A stretch of 64,000 bases of DNA from Octopus vulgaris (taxonomy: Eukaryota), in NCBI GenBank assembly GCA_951406725.2, contig OX597823.1, forward strand, positions 117,056,001 to 117,120,000, in the 5' to 3' direction. Positions within the stretch are counted from its first letter, which is position 1; the number at the start of each line of letters is the position of its first letter. Below, piece by piece: positions 7,536 through 62,243 of this stretch. The position numbers and the translations under genes are program-made. Under the pieces are notes generated by a model. It had not been told where the DNA came from, did no database searches, and saw only the letters and a list, made by a program, of their open reading frames with translations.

Positions 7536-7595
<60 letters not shown>

Positions 7596-8737: not shown

Positions 8738-8904
8738 TAGGCGTAGGAGTGGCTGTGTGGTATGTAGCTTGCTTACCAACCACATGGTTCTGGGTTCAAT
8801 CCCACTGTTTCGCACCTTGGGCAAGTGTCTTCTACTATAGCCTTGGGCCGACCAAAGCCTTGTGAGTGGATTTGGTAGACGGAAACTGAAAGAAGCCTGT
8901 CGTA

Positions 8905-8905
<1 letters not shown>
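8738..8905 (+). mobile_element. SINE-B head
   Basis: GGAGTGGCTGTGTGG..GGTTCAATCCC..CACCTTGGGCAAGTGTC, ends in (TA)n. Confidence 0.8.
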
Positions 8906-8981
<76 letters not shown>

Positions 8982-8984
8982 CAG

Positions 8985-9146
8985 GTGCAGGAGTGGCTGT
9001 GTGGTAAGTAGCTTGCTTACCAACCACATGGTTCTGGGTTCAGTCCCACTGTGTGGTACCTTGGGCAACTATATTCTACTATAGCCTCAGGCCGACCAAA
9101 GTCTTGTGAGTGGATTTAGTAGATGGTAACTGAAAGAAACCTGTTG

Positions 9147-9148
<2 letters not shown>
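8985..9148 (+). mobile_element. SINE-B head, second tandem copy
   Basis: Near-identical to 8738-8905, separated by (TA)n. Confidence 0.8.
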
Positions 9149-9199
<51 letters not shown>

Positions 9200-9632
9200 T
9201 TATTTATTTATGTATATGTTTGTGTGTCTTGCAGCCGTCCAAGAATTTGGACCTGGAGATCTCCATTTCCAGCGACTTTGAGGGCCACCTCCCAGTGGTG
9301 TTGGAAATGGAGATCTCAGAAGAAACACTAAGAGACAAAAAAACTACAGGGTACATATTTATTACTCTCAAAGGATGGGAGACAAAATTGATTCTATTGG
9401 GATTTGAACTCAGATCACAGAAGAAATATTGCAAGGTGTTCGACCTAGTACTTTATGGAGTCTGCAGCAAAGATTTGTTGATTTCCATTGTAATCCATGA
9501 TATCAGTAATCCTGGGTTCTATTCTGGCTAGTAGTGATTGTTTCACATGCATAATGTTAAATATGATAGTGCTCAGTCATAAAATTTGGTTATTCAAGAA
9601 TGAAGAATCTCAGGCACTGAATATCCGAATAA

Positions 9633-13746: not shown

Positions 13747-13777
<31 letters not shown>

Positions 13778-13780
<3 letters not shown>

Positions 13781-15334
13781 CATCATCATCGTTTAGCGTC
13801 TGCGTTCCATGCTAGTATGGGTTGGACGGTTCAACTGCGGTCTGGGAAGCCACATGGCTGCACCAGGCCCAGTCTGATCTGGCAAAGTTTCTACGGCTGG
13901 ATGCCCTTCCTAACGCCAACCACTCCATGAGTGTAGTGGGAGCATTTTACGTGCCACCGGCACGGAGGCCAGGCAAGGCTGGCAACGGCCATGATCGGAT
14001 GGTGCTTTTTACATGCCACCGGCACGTGGCCAGTCGGGGCGGCACTGGCAACAGCCACATTCGGATGGTTCTCTTACGTACCACCAGCACTGGTATCACA
14101 ACTGCAATTTCCATTGATGTTGATCGATTTTGATTTTGATTTTGGATTTTCACTTGCCTCAACAGGTCTTCACAAGTAGAGTTTTGTGTCCCAAGAAGGA
14201 AAGGTATGCATAAGTGGACTGGCTACATCCCAGGTAGAGGCCATGGGTTATGGTCTCACTTGTCCTGCCGGGTCTTCTCATGCACAGCATACTTCCAAAG
14301 GTCTCAGTCTCTAGTCATTTCCTCGGTGAGACCTAAAGTTCGAAGGTCGTGCTTCACCACTTCATCCCAGGTTTTCCTGGGTGTGCCTAATCCAAAGGTT
14401 CCCTCACCGCTAGGGTGTGGCACTTTTTCACACAACTATCTTCATCCATTCTCACCACATGACCATACCAGCGCAAATGTCTCTCTTGCACACCACAACT
14501 GATGCTTCTTAGGTTCCACATTTCTCTCAAGGTACTTACACTCTGTTGAGTATGAACACTGACATTACACATCCATCGGAGCATACTGGCTTCATTTCTT
14601 GTGAGCTTACACATATCCTCAGCAGTCATGGCCCATGTTTCACTGCCATGTAGCATGGCTATTCGTACACATGCATCATACAGTCTGCCTTTTACTTTGA
14701 GCGAGAGGCCTTTTGTCACCAGCAGAGGTAAGAGCTCTCTGAACTTTGCCCAAGCTATTCTTACTCTAGCAGTTACACTTTCAGCACACCCGCCCCCGCT
14801 ACTGACTTGGTCACCTAGGTAACGGAAGCTATCAACTATTTCTAGTTTTTCTCCCTGGAATGTGGCAGAAGTTGGTCTCAGAGCATTTTCAGTGTTTATT
14901 GCTCCTGAGCATCTGCCACATACAAAAACTATCTTCCTAGTTAGCCTTCCTTTGACGTTGCTGCACCTCTTATGTGTCCAGAGCTTACACTTGGTGCATC
15001 TTATAGAGTTTCTACCTACGCTTTTTCTACAGATCGAGCAGGGCCATCTACCTGAAGGCGTTTGCGACTTGTCTACCTTCCTACTTATAAGGACTTTGGT
15101 TTTAGCTAGGTTGACTTTAAGGCCCTTCGATTCTAATCCTTGTTTCCACACCTGAAACTTCTCCTCCAGTTCTGATAGTGACTCAGCAATTAGAGCAAGG
15201 TCATCAGCATAGAGGAGCTCCCAGGGGCATCCTGTCTTGAATTCCTCCGTTATTGCCTGGAGGACTATGATAAATAGGAGGGGGCTGAGGACTGTGCCTT
15301 GGTGGACCCCTACCTCTACCCGGAATTCTTCACT
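13778..15334 (-). mobile_element. 5'-truncated RTE-clade LINE (RT C-half, PHD finger, C-terminus, 3' UTR, (ATG)n tail)
   Basis: ORF 14387-15463 encodes GVHQG..SPLLF, YADD (15200-15211), FRYLGD, WYGHVVRM; after a frameshift near 14412 it continues GTPRKTWDEVVKHDL..KTRQDK* (stop 14256-14258); 3' UTR ends in (GAT)n at ~13780. Confidence 0.9.
14256..15334 (-). pseudogene. RTE reverse transcriptase remnant with embedded C4HC3 zinc finger; the N-terminal part of the track ORF is microsatellite read-through
   Basis: RT motifs as above; finger at 14909-15040; one frameshift and one late stop. Confidence 0.85.
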
Positions 15335-16020
15335 GTATGTATACATACATATATATATATACATACATATATATATATATATACATACACACACACATAC
15401 ATACATACATACATATATATATACGCACTCTTTTATTTGTTTCGCTGATAGGTCTGTGGACATCCTGAAGCAGCTCCTTGAAGACTTTCGCTGATCAAAC
15501 CGACTGTCCTACTTACTTTCTTAAAGTCTTGTTTATATTCTATCAGTCTCTATTTTCAAGACCATTATTTTCATGGAAACATAAACAAACCAACATCAGA
15601 TATCAAATGACAAGAGGCAAACAGAAAAATGTGTACCTGCTCACATACAAACACAAGCACTCACCTGCATAAACTGTATACAACATCTCTCCACACAATT
15701 TTCTTCAACCAAAGTCATTCACAACACATAAGTCAGTTGGGATCGTGGTTAAAAATATTTTCCCAAGGTGCCAGGCTGTGAGGCTGAACCAGAATCCACA
15801 TGGTTACAAAGTAGAATTATTAACAACACACCCATGCCTGCTATACGCTTGTTGATATAAACAAGGCTATCATATATCATATTCAATAATATGCATAAAT
15901 AAGTATATATGTGTGTGTATGTATACACACAACACCCATGGGCACTCGTTCACACACACGTGCGCACACACACACACACACACAAATATATGTGTGTGTG
16001 TGTTTGTGTGTGTGTGTATA

Positions 16021-22225: not shown

Positions 22226-23097
22226 CAGGGTGCAGTGAATAAACTGTCATCGAAATTGCACAAAAAATGAAAACAACACTGACATCTCAATTTAACAGAT
22301 ATATTTATCAAAAGTACATAAAAATATCTGGAAATACGAAAGAGTAAATTTATTCAATAAAATTGCCATTGGCTTCAACCACAGCCTCCAAACAACTTCA
22401 GAATCTCCTGCAAATCTTCTGGATGGGCCCCTTGTTTAAGTTGGTGAATGCTGCCATAATCCTTGGCTTTTCTTTATCTTTGGTGTTACAAGGAGTTTTG
22501 TTGGTCTCTTGCTCAACTGCGCCCCACATATAATAATGAAGGGGGTTGCAGTCTGGGCAGTTCGATGGCTAGATTTTAGGGGTGATGTGGTCACAGAAAT
22601 TATCTGACAGCCATGAATGGCTTCTCCTACTTTTGTGGCATGACACAGAGTCTTGTTGCCAGACATAGGGTCTTCCAGCAGCCACACTCTTGACCCAGGG
22701 CAGCACTACCTCCTCTAGGCATTTGTTGTATGTCTCTGTCTTGAATCTGAGGACATGTGGGAAGATGAATGGAGGCATAACATCGCCATCACTAGCGTTC
22801 ACTCCAAACACCATGATGTTGACTAAATGTTTGGTTTTTATCCCCTCAGTACATGTCTTCAGATTGCACATGTCTTCAGATTGACACCCAAACACTCTGA
22901 AATGTTCATATTGGAGCTTCCAGCATGAATCCCTAACAGTACAGCTTGTTGTTTCCAAATTTCTGGCAGAATGAATTGCATCATGGTGCTGTTTCCCTCA
23001 CAGACTGTCCAACCATACTGTGCAGCTAACATAATCAAAAACCAACAATGTGCATGCAGGAAATTAAGAATGATGACAATTGACCCATTGCACCCTG
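22226..23097 (-). mobile_element. Internally deleted Tc1/mariner (DD37D, maT-like) transposon
   Basis: TA-flanked imperfect 26-bp TIRs (CAGGGTGCAGTGAATAAACTGTCATC at 22226; GATGACAATTGACCCATTGCACCCTG ending 23097); translation MVFGVNASDG..VWQQD-37aa-[H]YYMW. Confidence 0.85.
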
Positions 23098-25058: not shown

Positions 25059-25138
25059 GTATATATATATATATATACAGAGAGAGAGAGAGAGAGATAG
25101 ATAGGTAGGTAGGTTGGTAGACAGACCGACAGACAGAC

Positions 25139-25619: not shown

Positions 25620-26095
25620 ATCATCATCATCATCATCATCATCGTTTAACGTCCGCTTTCCATGCTAGCATGGGTTGGACGATTCAACTGGGGTCTGGCA
25701 AGCCCGAAGGCTGCACCAGATCTGGCAGTGTTTCTACAGCTGGATGCCCTTCCTAACGCCAACCACTCCGAGAGTGTAGTGGGTGATTTTATGTGCCACC
25801 GACACAGGTGCCAGACGAGACTGGCAGACAGTCACGCTCGAATGGTGTTTTTTATGTGCCACCGACACAGGTGCCAGACGAGGCTGGCAGACGGCCACGC
25901 TCGGATGGTGTTTTTTATGTGCCACCGACACAGGTGCCAGACGAGGCTGGCGAACGGCTATGATCGGATGGTGTTTGTTACGTGCCCACAGCATGGGGCC
26001 AGTCGATGCGGTACTGGCTACGGTCCCGTTCGGATGGTTTTCTTATGTGCCACCGGCACTGGTACCACAAGGATACAAATTCCATTGATGTTCAT
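25620..26095 (-). mobile_element. RTE 3'-tail repeat (family D) with 63-bp tandem units
   Basis: Units start at 25791, 25854, 25917, 25980. Confidence 0.8.
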
Positions 26096-37031: not shown

Positions 37032-37250
37032 AGGTGGCCAGCAGGCAGAATCGTTAGCACACAGGGCAAAATGCTTAGCAGCATTTTATCCATGTTGATG
37101 TTCTAAGTTCAAATTTCACTGAGGTCAACTTTGCCTTTCATCCTTTTGGGGTCAATATAATAATAGGAACCTGGTGAGCAATGGGGTCAATGTAATCGAT
37201 TTACCCACTCCTCCAAAATTGCTGGCCTTGCACCAAAATATGAAACAAAT
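37032..37250 (+). mobile_element. SINE-A
   Basis: Family head and body. Confidence 0.7.
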
Positions 37251-37251
37251 T

Positions 37252-37515
37252 ATAGGCACAGGAGTGGTTGTGTGGTAAGTGGGAATAGGCACAGGAGTGG
37301 CTGTGTGGTAAGTTGCTATAGGCACAAATGTAACTGTGTAGTAAGTAGTTATAGGTGCAGGTATGGCTGTGTGGTAAGTAGCAGTAAGCATAGGACTGGC
37401 TGTGTTGTAAGCAGAAATAGGCACAGGAGTGACTGTGTTGTAAGCAGAAATAGGCACAGGAGTGGCTGTGTTGTAAGCAGAAATAGGCACAGGAGTGACT
37501 GTGTTGTAAGCAGAA
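37252..37515 (+). repeat. 33-bp minisatellite, 8 units, derived from the SINE-B 5' end
   Basis: ATAGGCACAGGAGTGGCTGTG(T/G)TGTAAG units at 37252, 37285, 37318, 37351, ~37384, 37417, 37450, 37483. Confidence 0.9.
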
Positions 37516-39389
37516 ATAGACGCATACTACATGTGGAATTCTACTTTAAATGATAGTTTTAAAGTTGTCTCCCTTTCCCACTGAGATAAAAATGAACCTC
37601 CTGAGTTAATGCTTTCATTTCCTCATTAGGAATAGAATTTCAGTTAGTTACAATTAATTTAATTATTAGATGTTGCAAAGAGGGAGCAAGGTCTATTCAA
37701 ATATAAGGGAACACAAAATGGTCCTACTACTACTACTACTACTACTACTAGCAGCAGCAGTAGTAGTAGGATGTCTCTTGTTTATGGTGTTTTGAAGAGC
37801 ACTATTTCTATAAGTCAGTCATTGACATTATCATCATCATCAACATTGTCATCATTTTATGTCTGCTTTCCTGGCTGGCATGAGTTAGATGGTTCACCAA
37901 TCTTGAGTGATGGCATATTTTGGAATATTCATTTCGATGTGTCAGGGGACTACATCTCACTCACGATTCTCTCAGCTACCACATCTTCTTTCACTCAATC
38001 TCTCTCTCACACACACACACACACTCTCCCTCCGTTGCTCTCTCTCACTTCCTCTTCCCCTCTCTTTTACTTTCTCTCTCACCCCTCCCCTTACTCTCCC
38101 CCTCATGCACATCTCTCAACAGTGAGATACCATCACAGCCCTATTACATCAGTGCAACGCGTCAAATTTAAATAACTTCAACATTTACATTGCTTCTTTT
38201 TTATTATCTAAACACTTTGTCCCTTTGGTTTTATAGCAATTTAGCAGAGAGATGCTAAACTATCTCTGTATGCCAATCTTTTTTTTCTTAATGTAAATAA
38301 TTAAAAACTTATTGAATGAAAGCAAAAATCAATGGCTACAAATCACTTTAAAGTATATCTCAAATACAAATCAATCCCGTATGAAATTAATCTTCACAAA
38401 TGTTTGGCTCTTTTCCACCAATTATCTTCATCTTAAGCAGTTGGCAATGTTGTTTTAGAATGAGTTAATGTTGTTGCTGTTGTGGTTGTTGTTGTTTTTG
38501 TTATTACTGCTGTATTAGCAGTTCTTGCAATAGTCGTTACAGTTTTGGTAATAGTTGTATATACTATATATATAATTATATATACATACATACATATATA
38601 TTATGTGTATATATATTTAATGTACATATATAATGTGTGTGTGTATATATATATACATATATGTATATAAATATATATGTATATATATATATTTAATGAA
38701 CATATATAATGTGTGTGTGTGTGTGTATATATAAACATATATGTATATAAATATATATATATATATATATATACGCATATATATATTATGTAAATATATA
38801 TTTAATGTACATCTATAATGTGTGTGTGTATATATATATACATATATGTATATGAATATATATGTATGTATAAATATTTATATATATATACCCACACACA
38901 CATATATATTAGCATGGAAAGCGGACGTTAAACGATGATGATGATGATATATATATATAATGTACATATATGTATATATATATATATATACATGTACATG
39001 TGTGTGTGTGTGTGTGTGTTATATAAGTGAGAGAGTGAAGTTATTTTATATCAAATTTAGTTCATTTTCCTATATATTTTAATTTAATTCCATTTTAGTG
39101 GTATGGGTATGGATGTTCTGTATTGATTCCTGTAATGATAACAGCATCAGCTACACTCTGCTGCCTAATTAATGTGAAGGCATATCCCCACCTTTCCCAC
39201 TGGCCACACCACATGCACACACACACACACACACACACACACACCATACTGGTACCCACATCATACCCACTTGACACCTATTTTGCAACACATTCACTTC
39301 AATGTGAGTATTCTACTTTAATGATTGTGTCACGTTGCATGGTTTGTTGTGTGTCAGATATAACAGACCAGTGTTGTTGTGACTGTCTA

Positions 39390-53864: not shown

Positions 53865-54745
53865 TAAGTTAAGTTGAGTTAAGTTAAATTTTTGGCTCAA
53901 AATGCAAAAAGCAAGGCCATGTAGTGGGACATGGAGTTATGTACAGGGAGGGTGTTCATGCAAAGAGTTCAGGCTATTTCTGGTCAAGAGTGACTTTGAA
54001 CCAAGCGGTTGTCGGCATCTTCACTATCTCGTCTGGCAGCTTATTCCACGGATCCGCAACCCGGATGGAGAAAGCCCCTCTCCTTCGATTGAGATGAAAT
54101 CGTCACAGATAGAGCTTTTCGGAGTGACCCCACAGCCAACGCTCTGGAGCAGGAGTGAAGAACAGATTCCCGTACTCCAATATGGGTCTCACCAGCATGA
54201 CATAGAGCAGTAGGAATATGGCTGCTGTGAGCGTTCCGAATGACCGTCGAATCAAAAACAGAGCTCTGTGTGCTTTGTTGGTAGCATGGACGCACTGGGC
54301 CAAAGGCAAAAAGGAAGAATCCACCAAGATAGCCAGGTCCTTTACCTGGTCGGTCCTCTCCAGCAGCAGACGACCCGGCTCGAAATCAAGTTGAGTTGCA
54401 GGAGAAGAGCCAACAGGCAGATGACAGCACTTTGACACATTCAGACACAGGTCCCATTCATTAGACCATCTCCAAACTTGTTGGAGACATCAACGAAGAT
54501 CAGCTGTATCACCGTGAGGAGCGACCAGTTTGACATCATCGGCAAATAGAAGGGTATGTTGCGTGAGGTTGTCGGGCAAGTCATTTATGAAGACTAAAAA
54601 CAATAAGAACCCAAGCACTAAACCTTGAGGCATGCCACTGCTCGCACTGGAGACGTAGGACAGTGAACCATTAACTTGGACTTGGAAGGAGCGATCTGAG
54701 AGGAAGGCACCAACCCATCGTACAATATCCGGATGGATACTTGTG
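53865..54745 (-). mobile_element. 5'-truncated CR1-type LINE (RT C-half) with (AACTT)n tail
   Basis: SGMPQGLVLG.LLFL.FINDLP..LLFADDVKL..W..EW.L.LN.SKC..KDL..RPILEYG..WNKLP; internal deletion after EYG; short tandem 3' tail. Confidence 0.85.
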
Positions 54746-54769
54746 CATTTATCACACAAGTGTGTTAGT

Positions 54770-55000
54770 GGGATTACTGGCAGAATCGTTAGCATGCCGG
54801 GTGAAATGCTTAGCAGTATTTCGTCTGTTGTTACGTTCTGAGTTCAAATTCCACCGAGGTTGACTTGCCTTTCATCCTTTCAGGGTCGATAAATTAAGTA
54901 CCAGTTACGCACTGGAGTCGATATAATCGACTTAATCCGTTTGTCTGTCCTTGTTTGTCCTCTCTACGTTTAGCCCCTTGTGAGTAGTAAAGAAATAGGT
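54770..55000 (+). mobile_element. SINE-A
   Basis: Low-divergence long-tail copy. Confidence 0.8.
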
Positions 55001-55556: not shown

Positions 55557-55795
55557 CTTTTCACGTCCCATAGACCCACAGAGTCAGTTTCGCAGGTTCT
55601 CTGGTGTATACACTCCTCCATGGATGGTGAGAAGTATATACAGGAATACTTATTTTTGCCAGCTGAGTGGACTAGAGCAACGTGAAATGAAGTGTTTTGC
55701 TCAAGACCACAATGCATTGCTCAGTCAGTCCAGGAATTGAAACCACAATCTTACAATCATGAGTCCAATACCCTAACCACTAAGCCATGCATCTC
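55557..55795 (-). mobile_element. SINE-F-like head with a different tail
   Basis: TGGCTTAGTGG A-box, GGTTTCAATTCC B-box, CTTGAGCAAAACACTTC segment; partial relative at ~60575-60745. Confidence 0.55.
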
Positions 55796-58519: not shown

Positions 58520-59175
58520 TACTTCCATGTGACTGGTGCCTGGTCAGCCATGATCTTTCATTCTTGGCCTGACTGCCGACCGTCAACATGTCTTGTGTCC
58601 ATCTCCCATGTTCCTACCTTTAGGCTTTTACTTCATACACACCACCTCAATTTGAATTGTTATTTCTTGTTGTTATATTCGTAATTGTGTACCATGTTCT
58701 CCGTTTTTTTGTTTGTTTGACTTTTCATCTTTGTTGCTGTACACATTTGCTAGATTTCTTATAAAGGGGTCTAATGCTCTTAGCTTATACTTTTTTGGGG
58801 ACAACCAGATCGAACCATCTCAAGTGTAACTGTCCAAAATGGTCGTGACTTCTGGTACTTGACTGATGAAAGATAGCTAAGAAAAACCCGTCTTTTTTTG
58901 CCTGTCCTCCTAGTTGTTGTTTCTCTTGTCCGCCTTTGTGTCATCTGTCTGTCCAAACGTTTTAATGCCCTCTATTGCGTTTTTGTTCCATTATATATAT
59001 ATATTTATATTAAACTTACCTGTTAGTACAAATTCTGTGTGTGTTGTATTCTATTTCTTAATACATGTCAAAATTAAACAGAGAATACAACCTGGCAACC
59101 ACACCAGACTCTGAGGGTGGAGTCTTCGACTTGGCCTGAGCATGGACTCAAACTCAAATGAAATGAAATGAAATG

Positions 59176-59401
59176 AAATGAAAAAGTATGGTAAATAAAC
59201 AAATGAAATAACATAGACTGAATGTAAAAACAAATGGGAGACAAACAGAAGGTCCATATCTCTTCATCAGTTATTGACCAATTGAGTTTTGTACCAATTG
59301 GTTGATAACTGTCAAAGGATTACAGACCCTTTTGTCTCCTGTTTGTTTTTGCATTCACTATACATTATGTTGTTTGTTTATTTATCATACATTTTTCATT
59401 T
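59176..59401. repeat. Diverged fold-back palindrome
   Basis: Arms 59176-59284 and 59295-59401, 10-nt loop. Confidence 0.75.
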
Positions 59402-59531
59402 ATTAGATACATATGTGTGTGTGTGTGTGTATATTTGTATGTATGTATGAATGTAAGTATGTATGTATGTATGCATATATATATATACATATTTATGTTT
59501 GTGTGTGTATATATATATATATATATATGTA

Positions 59532-59798
59532 AATTGCAGCATGGACGCTGTTTATAAGCCATTTAAAAACACACTAAAACTGTTAGATTTACTTCAACAT
59601 TTAAATTCAATTTGCCAAAATATTTTCATCACTTTGAGACCGCAACCTTTTCACTGACAAAATTCCATGCTGCATCTGATGAACTAACTGTTACTTTCTC
59701 AGATGCAGCATGGAATTTATTAAATTTAAATGTTGAAGTGAATCTAATGGTTTTTGTGTGTTTTTAAATGGCTTATAAACACCTTCCATGCTGCAATT
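59532..59798. repeat. Fold-back palindrome with a one-sided ~50-nt extra segment
   Basis: Outer arms begin AATTGCAGCATGGA / end TCCATGCTGCAATT; inner stem 59660-59679 / 59699-59718. Confidence 0.85.
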
Positions 59799-59870
59799 GT
59801 TTTTGTTTCAGCACAGGATCTCAGATTAGGTCACTTGCTATGCAAGTACATCTCCTTAATATATATATAT

Positions 59871-60332
59871 GTCAGTCATTAGAAAAGTGCTCTAGCAATG
59901 CTGGTGCTGACTAGCACCCTCCATCACTTTAGTAACAACTATATTTGTGGCCTTTTGGTTGTAAATTGTGAATAGCCACCTTAATAATTTATAATTCTCA
60001 CTTCACTGTTTTCGGAATCAGTCAGTGTTTCCTATGCTGTTCTCTATAAGACTGACAAGGTGACCAAGGTTCTTTATGCCCTTGGTGACAGAGTAATGGG
60101 TCACTGATGAAGATTAATCAAATCTGAAATCAGCGCTGATATGACTCCTTCACGATTGTCATAGGGAGTTTGTCTCTCTTGTCAGTCATTAGAAAAGTGC
60201 TTTCATGTGGCTAAGAGTTGTTTTGACTCTTATTTCTAGCAATGCTGGTGTGGACTAGCACCCTCTGTCACTTTAGTGATGTCTACACTTGTTGCTTTTG
60301 GTTGTAAATTGCAAATAGCCACCTTAATAATT

Positions 60333-60334
<2 letters not shown>
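59871..60334 (+). mobile_element. Retrozyme-like or Penelope pLTR-like unit (direct repeat A - HHR core - A') in (TA)n
   Basis: 59871-59991 is repeated at 60181-60334 (with a 34-nt extra segment); hammerhead lies between; (TA)n on both sides. Confidence 0.7.
60085..60162 (+). ncRNA. Type I hammerhead ribozyme, intact core; predicted cleavage after 60141 (AUA)
   Basis: GGGUCA-CUGAUGA-AGAUU-AAUCA-AAUCU-GAA-AUCAGCGCUGAU-A-UGACUC; all core nucleotides present; helices I-III pair; distal helix I GUGACA/UGUCAU. Confidence 0.85.
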
Positions 60335-60391
<57 letters not shown>

Positions 60392-60479
60392 AATCAACTG
60401 GAACAGCAATCAGCATCATTGATGGAATGCCAGTTTTTATATACATGTATATGTATGTATATACGTGTTTATATATATA

Positions 60480-60510
<31 letters not shown>

Positions 60511-61154
60511 CCAGTTGATTCGATGAACCAACCAAACAGCTTGCTTCTGAAATTAACATGCAAGTGGCTGAGTACTCCACAAACTCGCATATCCTTACTG
60601 TAGTTCTCAGGGAGAATCAGTGTAACACTGCATGTAACAAGGTTGGCTCTTTGAAATACAGGTACTACTCATTTTTGTAAGCTGAGTGGACTGGACCATC
60701 ATGAAATGAAGTGTCTTGCTCAAGAATACATTGCACCAATGGGTATTGAAATGGGTATTGATGTTATGATCATTAATTGAATATCCTAACAAAGAAGCCA
60801 TGGGCCTTCACCATTATATATATAAATGTATATGACATGTGTGCGTATATATATATATATATATATACATATATATTTATTTATGTATGTATGTATGTAT
60901 GTATGTATGTTGATTATGTTGTGGTGGGGGATAAACACAAATACAAGGACATACATACATGTGTATGTGTGTATCTTTGTATGTATGTACATATGTGTGT
61001 GTGTGTGTCTGTGTTTGTCCCCCCAACATCACATGACAACCAATGCTGGTGTGTTTATGTCCCCGTAACTTAGTGGTTCAGCAAAAGAGACTAAGCTTAC
61101 AAATATTGTGCTTCATCATGGCCACAGTCAAATGGCTTAAACGAGTAAAAGAAT

Positions 61155-62243
61155 ACAATAGCAGATAATAACTTTATTTATCAAAAATCTCTTCTATAAC
61201 GTTATTCACTAAAACCACCTTTAGCTTCTACAACTGCTTCTATATGAGATCCTAATCATCTTCATGCTCGAATCAAGTGGTTCTGGTTCATTTTGGACAT
61301 TACTCTGACTATGGCAGCTTTCAAAGAATCTTTGGTGTCATGGGTGTGTTCATTGACCACTCTCTCAACAACACTCCACATGTAATAGTCCAGTGGAATG
61401 AGACCTGGGGAATTAGGGGTTCTGTGATTGTGAAAATTTTCAGCCATCCATTCCTGTGTTACTAAAGCCATGTGTGATAGTTCTTACTGAAACACACATG
61501 GCCTTCCATTGCATACAGTTTTCTAACTAGGGCTTAACAATTATTTGCAGGACCTCAATATAGGTGGCAGAGTTAACTCGAAGGCCTTCATTGCTGACAA
61601 CCCCTAAAAGCATGACAGTTGCAGGAAACTTTGTATGCATAACACTTGGAACTTCAGAAGGATATGCACATAACCATCCATCATTTCTTCTGTTAACTTT
61701 TTGATCTTGGTCAAAGATTTTCTTGTTTGAGAATAACCAAATCAAATATTCTGCTGATTTTTCAGTTTGTTTAAAAGCCTTTTAGATCTGATGTAGTGAT
61801 TTTCTTTTGCTTTCTGATGTCTTCATGGACAACATTTCTGACTATTCTTCCTGACACATGGAGATCTTTTGCAGTTGACCTCATGGACTTTCTAGGATTG
61901 TAATAAATGATCTGTTGAACTTACTAGATAAATTCAGGTATTCTGATGATTTCAGAAAGTTTAGAATGCTTTTTATGCTTTGATACCGGTGATATGTTTC
62001 CATCTTCAGTCTCTAGCTCCTTACAAACTTTGTAGACGAAAGATCTGGTAACTTTTAAAAACCAAGCTATTTCTAAATAACTATGCTCAGCCTTTACAAC
62101 CACATTATCAGCATACCTCTTCATTTTTTGAGTAAGCTGAGGGTCTGCCGTTATTTTTTTCTGAAACACAGATTATACAGAGTTAGCAAAAAATGCAGCA
62201 ATGACCCCCAAATGGTATGCCCTCAAATATCTTATGCATCCTG
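61155..62243 (-). mobile_element. Decayed DD37D/maT-like mariner
   Basis: N-terminal HTH-like SYLEIAWFLKVTRSFVYKV; NRRNDGWL..TKFPATVMLLGVVSNEG; PNSPGLIPLDYYMWS; TA|CAGGATGCAT TIR at 62243; other end not seen. Confidence 0.75.

Follow-up and report, generated by a model that had tools for sequence, protein, structure and literature searches.

Animal retrozymes are a recently recognized source of abundant circular RNA, for which both integration and the mobilizing enzyme are still only parts of a model. The animal elements without long terminal repeats (non-LTR retrozymes) consist of AT-rich units that do not code for protein, are 170-400 nt long, and have a G+C content below 45-50% and a canonical type I hammerhead ribozyme (PMC7229834). 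According to the published model, oligomer transcription is followed by self-cleavage, circularization by tRNA ligase and reverse transcription of the primed circle into tandem cDNA, with the reverse transcriptase (RT) supplied by an autonomous element, the favoured candidate being a Penelope-like one (PMC7229834). The retrozymes of the mussel Mytilus galloprovincialis have units of 350-390 bp and about 5000 ribozyme copies (Cervera & de la Pena 2020, PMC7229834), and size variants of coral retrozymes differ by an indel of ~20 nt (PMC7229834). This report concerns a related-looking element in the common octopus, Octopus vulgaris. Within a stretch of 64,000 nt of contig OX597823.1 (positions 117,056,001 to 117,120,000, forward strand), hereafter the window, positions 59870-60334 hold a hammerhead motif flanked by a partial direct repeat. 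The locus is probably, although by no means certainly, an old, inert and dispersed copy of a non-LTR retrozyme-type element that lies inside a (TA)n microsatellite.

Several other described systems bear on this assignment. The canonical ribozyme of metazoan tandem repeats has a helix I of 6 bp, a helix II of ~4 bp and a short, palindromic helix III, through which adjacent ribozymes can function as a dimer (PMC4209133). The minimal ribozyme of Penelope-like elements instead has a helix II of 7-8 bp, a helix I of 4-5 bp, an unpaired base after A9 and little or no helix III (PMC4209133). In vertebrates, retrozymes also occur as dispersed monomer derivatives, which are regarded as incapable of further transposition, according to the available text of a preprint (Li, Clavereau & Pollet 2026, bioRxiv 10.64898/2026.07.22.740005), which also proposes a Penelope origin together with rolling-circle mobilization. 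The octopus element and its flanks are made up of the following parts, with position 1 being the first letter of the window.

59870-60334: whole element, A-B-A', 465 nt, non-coding, 1.4-1.5 units of ~310/344 nt
59859-59870, no strand: upstream flank, (TA)6
59870-59991, + strand: repeat arm A, 122 nt, short variant without the 34-nt segment (repeat finder, BLAST, alignment)
59992-60179, + strand: unique middle part B, 188 nt, carrying the hammerhead and the hairpin CCAAGG..CCTTGG
60180-60334, + strand: repeat arm A', 155 nt, long variant (repeat finder, BLAST, alignment)
60202-60235 (±1 nt ambiguity), + strand: 34-nt segment present in A' only, with the hairpin AAGAGT-TGTTTTG-ACTCTT (spacing shift, alignment, fold)
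60335-60389, no strand: downstream flank, a C and then (TA)27 at 60336-60389 (Tandem Repeats Finder)

An initial annotation of this DNA had described a repeat of ~120 bp that recurs 310 bp further on with 34 extra nucleotides, and the repeat finder, BLAST and alignment place it at the same coordinates to within ±1 base. The arms start with 22/22 identical bases (59870-59891 against 60180-60201), and 59891-59991 matches 60235-60334 at 86% identity (self-BLAST, E 2e-28); the spacing of A and A' moves from 310 to 344 nt because of the extra 34-nt segment at ~60202-60235. Although the perfect match at the arm starts was considered as a special feature, it was dropped, having a probability of ~0.2 at the observed non-CpG divergence. 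Over 121 aligned bases, the arms differ by 13 substitutions (10 transitions and 3 transversions) and one 1-nt indel, which corresponds to a Kimura two-parameter distance (K2P) of 0.118. At three sites (59922-3, 59936-7 and 59969-70) one arm has CA and the other TG, so that ancestral CpGs appear to have been lost independently in each arm. The element retains 3 CpGs where 17.6 would be expected; for the window as a whole the observed/expected ratio of CpG is 0.35, and the stronger depletion of the element fits long residence in methylated DNA.

Other structural statements of the initial annotation also stand. The three small hairpins that it named are all present, one of them (GGTGCT-GACT-AGCACC) inside arm A; the unit is non-coding, with a longest stop-free frame of 39 codons and none of 40 or more; and (TA)n adjoins both borders. 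The G+C content of the element and its units is 39-40%. The boundaries are sharp, in that homology between A and A' begins exactly at the end of (TA)6 and stops at 60334, beyond which lies C(TA)27. When the element is removed and the flanks are joined, they read ...ctccttaatatatatatat or ...ccttaatatatatatat followed by catatatatat..., a nearly continuous (TA)n tract that is presumed to be the empty site before insertion. For folding, a 310-nt unit was built from 60142-60179 plus 59870-60141 and a 343-nt unit from 60142-60334 plus 59992-60141. As circles, these are predicted to be ~60% paired, with long-range pairing between B and the start of A, and to fold somewhat more stably than shuffled versions (z of -1.9 and -2.3 for the 310-nt and 343-nt units, respectively), scores that are no more than suggestive of a circular unit.

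That the redundancy brackets a hammerhead, as had been proposed, is borne out by the position of the motif, which occurs once, in the unique part B between A and A'. Its parts are as follows.

60098-60147, + strand: type I hammerhead motif (descriptor scan, shuffle control)
60085-60153, + strand: extended hammerhead domain (read from the sequence, fold energy evaluated)
60098-60103 with 60142-60147, + strand: helix I, 6 bp with one G.U, GGGTCA/TGACTC
60104-60110, + strand: core CUGAUGA
60111-60115 with 60121-60125, + strand: helix II, 5 bp, AGATT/AATCT, loop AATCA
60126-60129, + strand: core GAAA
60129-60132 with 60137-60140, + strand: helix III, 4 bp including A15.1-U16.1, ATCA/TGAT, loop GCGC
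Between A60141 and U60142, + strand: predicted cleavage site, after the AUA triplet, with predicted ends ...CGCUGAUA and UGACUCC...

The motif has the elements that define a type I core, namely CUGANGA, GAA, the pair A60129-T60140 in the place of A15.1-U16.1, and a cleavage base other than G (A60141). The three helices (6/5/4 bp) likewise follow the type I layout, in which loops cap helices II and III and helix I is left open. Helices of 6 and 5 bp, together with a palindromic helix III of 4 bp and its GCGC loop, also agree with the canonical type I ribozyme. The whole of helix III, 60129-60140 (ATCAGCGCTGAT), is a perfect 12-nt palindrome. Helix I continues in a distal stem, GUGA (60085-60088) with UCAC (60150-60153), and between the distal and proximal stems lies an internal loop that is asymmetric, with 9 nt on the 5' side and 2 nt on the 3' side. 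No motif other than that at 60098-60147 emerged when both strands of the window (128 kb) were scanned with a motif descriptor. When the window was shuffled 400 times with dinucleotides preserved, motifs with helices of at least 4/3/3 bp arose at a rate of 0.025 per window, and 0/400 reached 6/5/4 bp. The 6-bp helix I, the internal loop with its distal stem, and the palindromic helix III are all traits of natural animal ribozymes that lie beyond the criteria of the scan.

Among known systems, the octopus element most resembles the mussel and coral retrozymes, with which it has in common an AT-rich unit of a few hundred bases, a type I hammerhead, indel variants and a predicted circular fold that is largely paired with itself. 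As in some mussel circles, the ribozyme is partly masked by alternative pairing, and the host is molluscan too. However, the likeness is drawn from published descriptions, the octopus motif has A-U at 10.1-11.1, the indel here is 34 nt as against ~20 nt in coral, and the mussel and coral arrays run from dimers to 62-mers, whereas the octopus locus has 1.4-1.5 units and one ribozyme. The vertebrate monomer derivatives are alike in that single copies, each roughly a unit long, lie scattered through the genome, but the families in the available text of the preprint are those of vertebrates plus a few of insects and corals, and that text describes neither partial terminal redundancy nor (TA)n targets. 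Penelope-like elements likewise have, in their pseudo-LTRs (pLTRs), a type I ribozyme with a palindromic helix III; they also form partial tandems and insert into microsatellites, (TA)n among them (PMC4209133; Craig et al. 2021, PMC8557442). Unlike the octopus element, they have a ribozyme in both repeats around an open reading frame (ORF) for RT/GIY-YIG, and their minimal ribozyme variant has G10.1-C11.1. The satellite 2 retrozymes of newts and axolotl (330-350 nt) and the Sm-alpha element of Schistosoma, which resembles a short interspersed nuclear element (SINE), are also non-coding repeats with a unit of ~330 nt and a type I ribozyme. Helix III of the amphibian retrozymes is much weaker (1-2 bp) than that of the octopus motif, and Sm-alpha has an RNA polymerase III-type head, which ARAGORN did not find in the octopus element. 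In the Schistosoma ribozyme, helix I has the 5'-side internal loop GUACU before its distal stem, and the octopus counterpart reads GUAAU. The LTR retrozymes of plants are similar to the octopus element in being non-autonomous, with direct terminal repeats and a circular RNA intermediate made by a hammerhead. They have as features of their own a type III ribozyme inside each LTR, a primer-binding site (PBS) and a polypurine tract (PPT), and they differ in their 4-bp target duplications, a G+C content above 55% and circles of 600-1000 nt.

Based on these comparisons, the unit length of 310/344 nt, the G+C content and the lack of coding capacity are those of a retrozyme; no search was aimed at a PBS or PPT. 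The sharp ends, and the way in which removal of the element rejoins the (TA)n tract, support insertion of such an element, and the differences between A and A' resemble decay within a genome, with transitions and transversions at 10:3 and three lost-CpG pairs. What the locus does not have is at least two head-to-tail units each with a ribozyme. Since monomer derivatives that lack these equally have been published, the missing tandem lowers the probability that the locus is a functional retrozyme and not that it derives from one. With a single ribozyme, a transcript could be cut at most once, so neither a unit-length RNA nor a circle would be released by the locus. By analogy with the vertebrate elements, it would fit a dead-end monomer derivative. 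The proposal in the initial annotation of a candidate retrozyme or circular RNA-derived insertion therefore stands as regards unit size, G+C content and ribozyme type; as regards the origin of the redundancy in a circle it is plausible at most, the A/A' differences fitting several routes equally.

The steps that would lead from a retrozyme family to such a copy can be outlined from the family model. Tandem units at source loci would be transcribed into oligomeric RNA, and each hammerhead, if active as its motif implies, would cut after the AUA triplet, at the equivalent of A60141, while the palindromic helix III, on the same supposition, would also allow neighbouring ribozymes to pair as dimers. 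Beginning at a nick in (TA)n, the RT of an autonomous element, which could be a Penelope-like element or a long interspersed nuclear element (LINE) using (TA)n tails, would copy a circular or oligomeric RNA beyond the length of one unit. O. vulgaris harbours 31 families of Penelope-like elements that were recently active, alongside Dong-R4 and RTE LINEs (PMC13282606). Integration of the cDNA would account for the redundancy at the ends and for the interruption of the (TA)n tract. Reverse transcription through 1.4-1.5 turns of a circle is a plausible, though unproven, source of the redundancy. If the redundancy did arise in this way, A and A' were the same at insertion, so their divergence dates the event to roughly 16 million years (My) ago, given the K2P of 0.118 (half per lineage) and a rate of ~0.0036 per site per My, calculated from the paired distances and ages in PMC13282606. 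The 34-nt difference between A and A' would then be a later deletion or insertion, and the one-ribozyme copy would have decayed neutrally over those ~16 My.

A number of observations weigh against a retrozyme origin and in favour of the opposing view, that a hammerhead-like motif arose by chance in a local 1.4-fold duplication or an unrelated repeat, with no ribozyme biology behind it. None of the Rfam 15 hammerhead families matches the window at the gathering score, or a region of 801 nt or 96 nt around the motif at E<=10. The base of helix II is A60111-T60125 where G10.1-C11.1, highly conserved in natural hammerheads (PMC4209133), would be expected, and the G-C pair comes second. Nearest-neighbour energies predict a minimum other than the catalytic fold (-8.7 kcal/mol), which is far less stable than a hairpin formed by pairing of CUGAU with AUCAG (-20.7 kcal/mol), although masking of the ribozyme by alternative pairing is known in plant and some mussel retrozyme circles (PMC7229834). 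The element is also the only copy in all data scanned. Self-BLAST revealed no second copy in the 64-kb window, nor was there one in a 20.9-kb O. vulgaris locus on OX597814.1 (L010). Beyond the octopus, an exact ribozyme-core pattern had 9 matches in JGI metagenomes, none with the flanks or remaining helices, and 0 matches in IMG/VR; a 22-mer common to A and A' had 0 matches in GTDB genomes; and the 39-codon frame found no relative among 1.84 billion representative proteins, its sole protein match, a repetitive bacterial adhesin with 37% identity, being a false positive. Direct repeats spaced by 140-365 nt are also frequent elsewhere in the window (at least 6 other loci, mostly tandem SINE pairs), and (TA)n also adjoins the 3' ends of two SINE families there. 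Extrapolating from the shuffles, a handful of chance motifs of such quality is expected in the whole 2.8-Gb genome. A chance origin is nonetheless unlikely, given that no shuffle was as good and that even the loose thresholds yield few motifs per window, that features outside the scan (the 6-bp helix I, the internal loop with its distal stem and the 12-nt palindrome) fit a ribozyme too, and that the unit size matches retrozymes. In addition, the element ends exactly at (TA)n on both sides, which argues for insertion rather than in-place duplication of unique DNA. The segment CUGAUGA ... CUGA with its terminal stem might alternatively be a small C/D-box RNA, since the only Rfam matches on 60099-60147 are to C/D-box families and a 6-bp terminal stem flanks the C-like and D-like boxes. 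This is highly improbable. The best of those matches, to snoU2_19, has 25.9 bits against a gathering score of 39, and the matches, all far below gathering, delete 37-42 model positions; the C box would begin with C and not with a purine, and the 5-bp helix II and palindromic helix III are left unexplained. C/D-box small nucleolar RNAs (snoRNAs) measure ~70-120 nt, whereas the segment has 43-50 nt and lacks both a C' box and a second guide, and the snoRNA reading is rejected. Around the element, Rfam at E<=10 gave no small-RNA family apart from these weak look-alikes and microsatellite 'miRNA' artefacts. A tRNA-derived SINE or Sm-alpha-like element was also considered and set aside, as ARAGORN found no tRNA-like head in 59000-61500.

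A retrozyme-type insertion must also be weighed against the possibility that the locus is a solo or truncated pLTR region of an autonomous Penelope-like element carrying its own hammerhead. Truncated Penelope-like elements have been considered the source of most single hammerheads in animal genomes (PMC4209133), the retrozymes of Xenopus are related in sequence to pLTRs according to the available preprint text (bioRxiv 10.64898/2026.07.22.740005), and octopus genomes contain many Penelope copies. Moreover, microsatellites such as (TA)n are favoured by Penelope-like elements, i.e. by Naiads and, by hypothesis, Neptune (PMC8557442). As a pointer to a Penelope-type endonuclease, however, the (TA)n flanks are weakened by the two SINE families ending in (TA)n, since such a junction could in this genome be the work of more than one kind of enzyme; the preference of Penelope-like elements for microsatellites would explain it, and so, equally well, would LINE-type machinery using (TA)n tails. 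The anatomy makes a Penelope fragment quite improbable. The ribozyme lies in the unique B and not in the repeat arms, so that in place of a ribozyme in each repeat and an RT/GIY-YIG ORF between them there is one ribozyme and a non-coding B of only 188 nt. Its architecture is canonical rather than of the minimal Penelope type, with a helix II of 5 bp, a helix I of 6 bp and a helix III of 4 bp. Neither RT/GIY-YIG motifs nor Pfam matches occur within ~5 kb, motif regexes for GIY-YIG and RT in six frames of the window and L010 revealed no Penelope remnant, and Pfam on ten neighbouring ORFs matched only RVT_1 of a LINE. An attached RT/GIY-YIG ORF was the feature that the initial annotation had named as counting against its proposal, and none lies between or beside the repeats. 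Within a retrozyme-type origin, it is possible, if less probable, that the redundancy did not come from a circle and reflects instead a linear oligomer of a heterogeneous array, Penelope-like template switching, or the remnant of a longer array after deletion or unequal crossing-over. Compatible with this, A and A' are different size variants (122/155 nt) that differ at 11% of sites, as neighbouring monomers of an old array would; a 5'-truncated upstream copy in partial tandem is a normal product of Penelope-type integration (PMC8557442); and indel variants occur within retrozyme families, including short and long ones in coral (PMC7229834). On the other hand, the published model favours circular templates (PMC7229834), the CA/TG differences and transition bias are equally explained by post-insertion decay of identical arms, and the coincidence of both ends of A-B-A' with the (TA)n tract makes a purely local duplication less likely. 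The divergence of the arms could equally reflect in-situ decay of two arms that began identical or the copying of two already different monomers of a heterogeneous multimer, and with a single copy nothing separates the routes. Doubtful, though conceivable, is the most far-reaching form of a circular origin, in which an undescribed octopus retrozyme family is still expressed as circles of ~310-345 nt and the locus is the footprint of target-primed reverse transcription for more than one round from a (TA)n nick.

As a single decayed copy, the element has no obvious effect on its host. If it is one of many in octopus genomes, the known host range of retrozymes extends to cephalopods, for which neither hammerheads nor retrozymes are reported in the searchable literature; the supplementary text file of PMC7229834 contains neither cephalopod terms nor ribozyme core strings. 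Many copies with terminal redundancy and (TA)n junctions would permit a test of circular against linear templates by their permutation points, and of Penelope against LINE mobilization by their junctions and tails. Were the locus truly the footprint of a circle, it would be natural evidence for the integration step of retrozymes, which has been proposed and never directly observed.

The surroundings of the element are rich in repeats. An RT remnant at 14390-15508 (- strand) is 86% identical to an O. vulgaris hypothetical protein, and L010, the locus that surrounds the gene for this protein, has many repeats in common with the window, at 75-94% identity, from which it follows that the window is octopus DNA. 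A protein search seeded with the hypothetical protein yielded no additional octopus proteins. Relatives of the RT remnant carry RVT_1 and PHD domains, and it represents a decayed LINE. A second RT remnant, 54106-54843 (- strand), is RVT_1 of a FADD-type LINE (Pfam E 1.6e-07) and lies ~5 kb upstream of the element on the opposite strand. (TA) runs of at least 6 units number 66 and make up 2.3% of the window. An abundant SINE, with a tandem pair at 8739-9217 and further copies at 7540, 25393, 45624 and 56437, is 90-94% identical to L010:1144-1334, and its 3' end, ...GAAACTGAAAGAAGCCTGTCGTATATATG, runs directly into (TA)n. A second SINE family ends in ...GTTAAACGATGATGATGATG(TA)n, at 25060 and 38947 and reversed at 13759, 27190 and 44561. 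Given such ends, many (TA)n tracts in the window are element tails or insertion sites targeted to tails.

Directly upstream of the hammerhead element, 59532-59798 is a foldback element resembling a miniature inverted-repeat transposable element, with two 80-nt arms that are 91% complementary and 107 nt apart; it starts right after (TA)10 (59508-59527) and has no other copy in the window or L010. Just downstream, a 13-nt inverted match, TGAATCAACTGGA at 60390-60402 and TCCAGTTGATTCG at 60511-60523, brackets a TA/TG microsatellite, in which the Rfam matches to mir-297, mir-466 and mir-4012 (60438-60500) are artefacts of the microsatellite, with 37.7 bits against a gathering score of 90. The right arm of that match (60511-60523) opens a repeat-like segment of ~300 nt, 60511-60810, with a partial match of 84% at 55638-55716. 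By eye, fragments of Tc1/mariner transposase-like ORFs can be made out at 61265-62172 (- strand) and 22572-22997 (- strand), e.g. ...PGLIPLDYYMWSVVE..., although Pfam gave no match for the pieces of 61265-62172. Additionally, the window contains tandem repeats of longer period, with ~10 copies of a 33-nt unit at 37220-37549 and, at 25787-25986, 3 copies of a 63-nt unit that are 85-95% identical.

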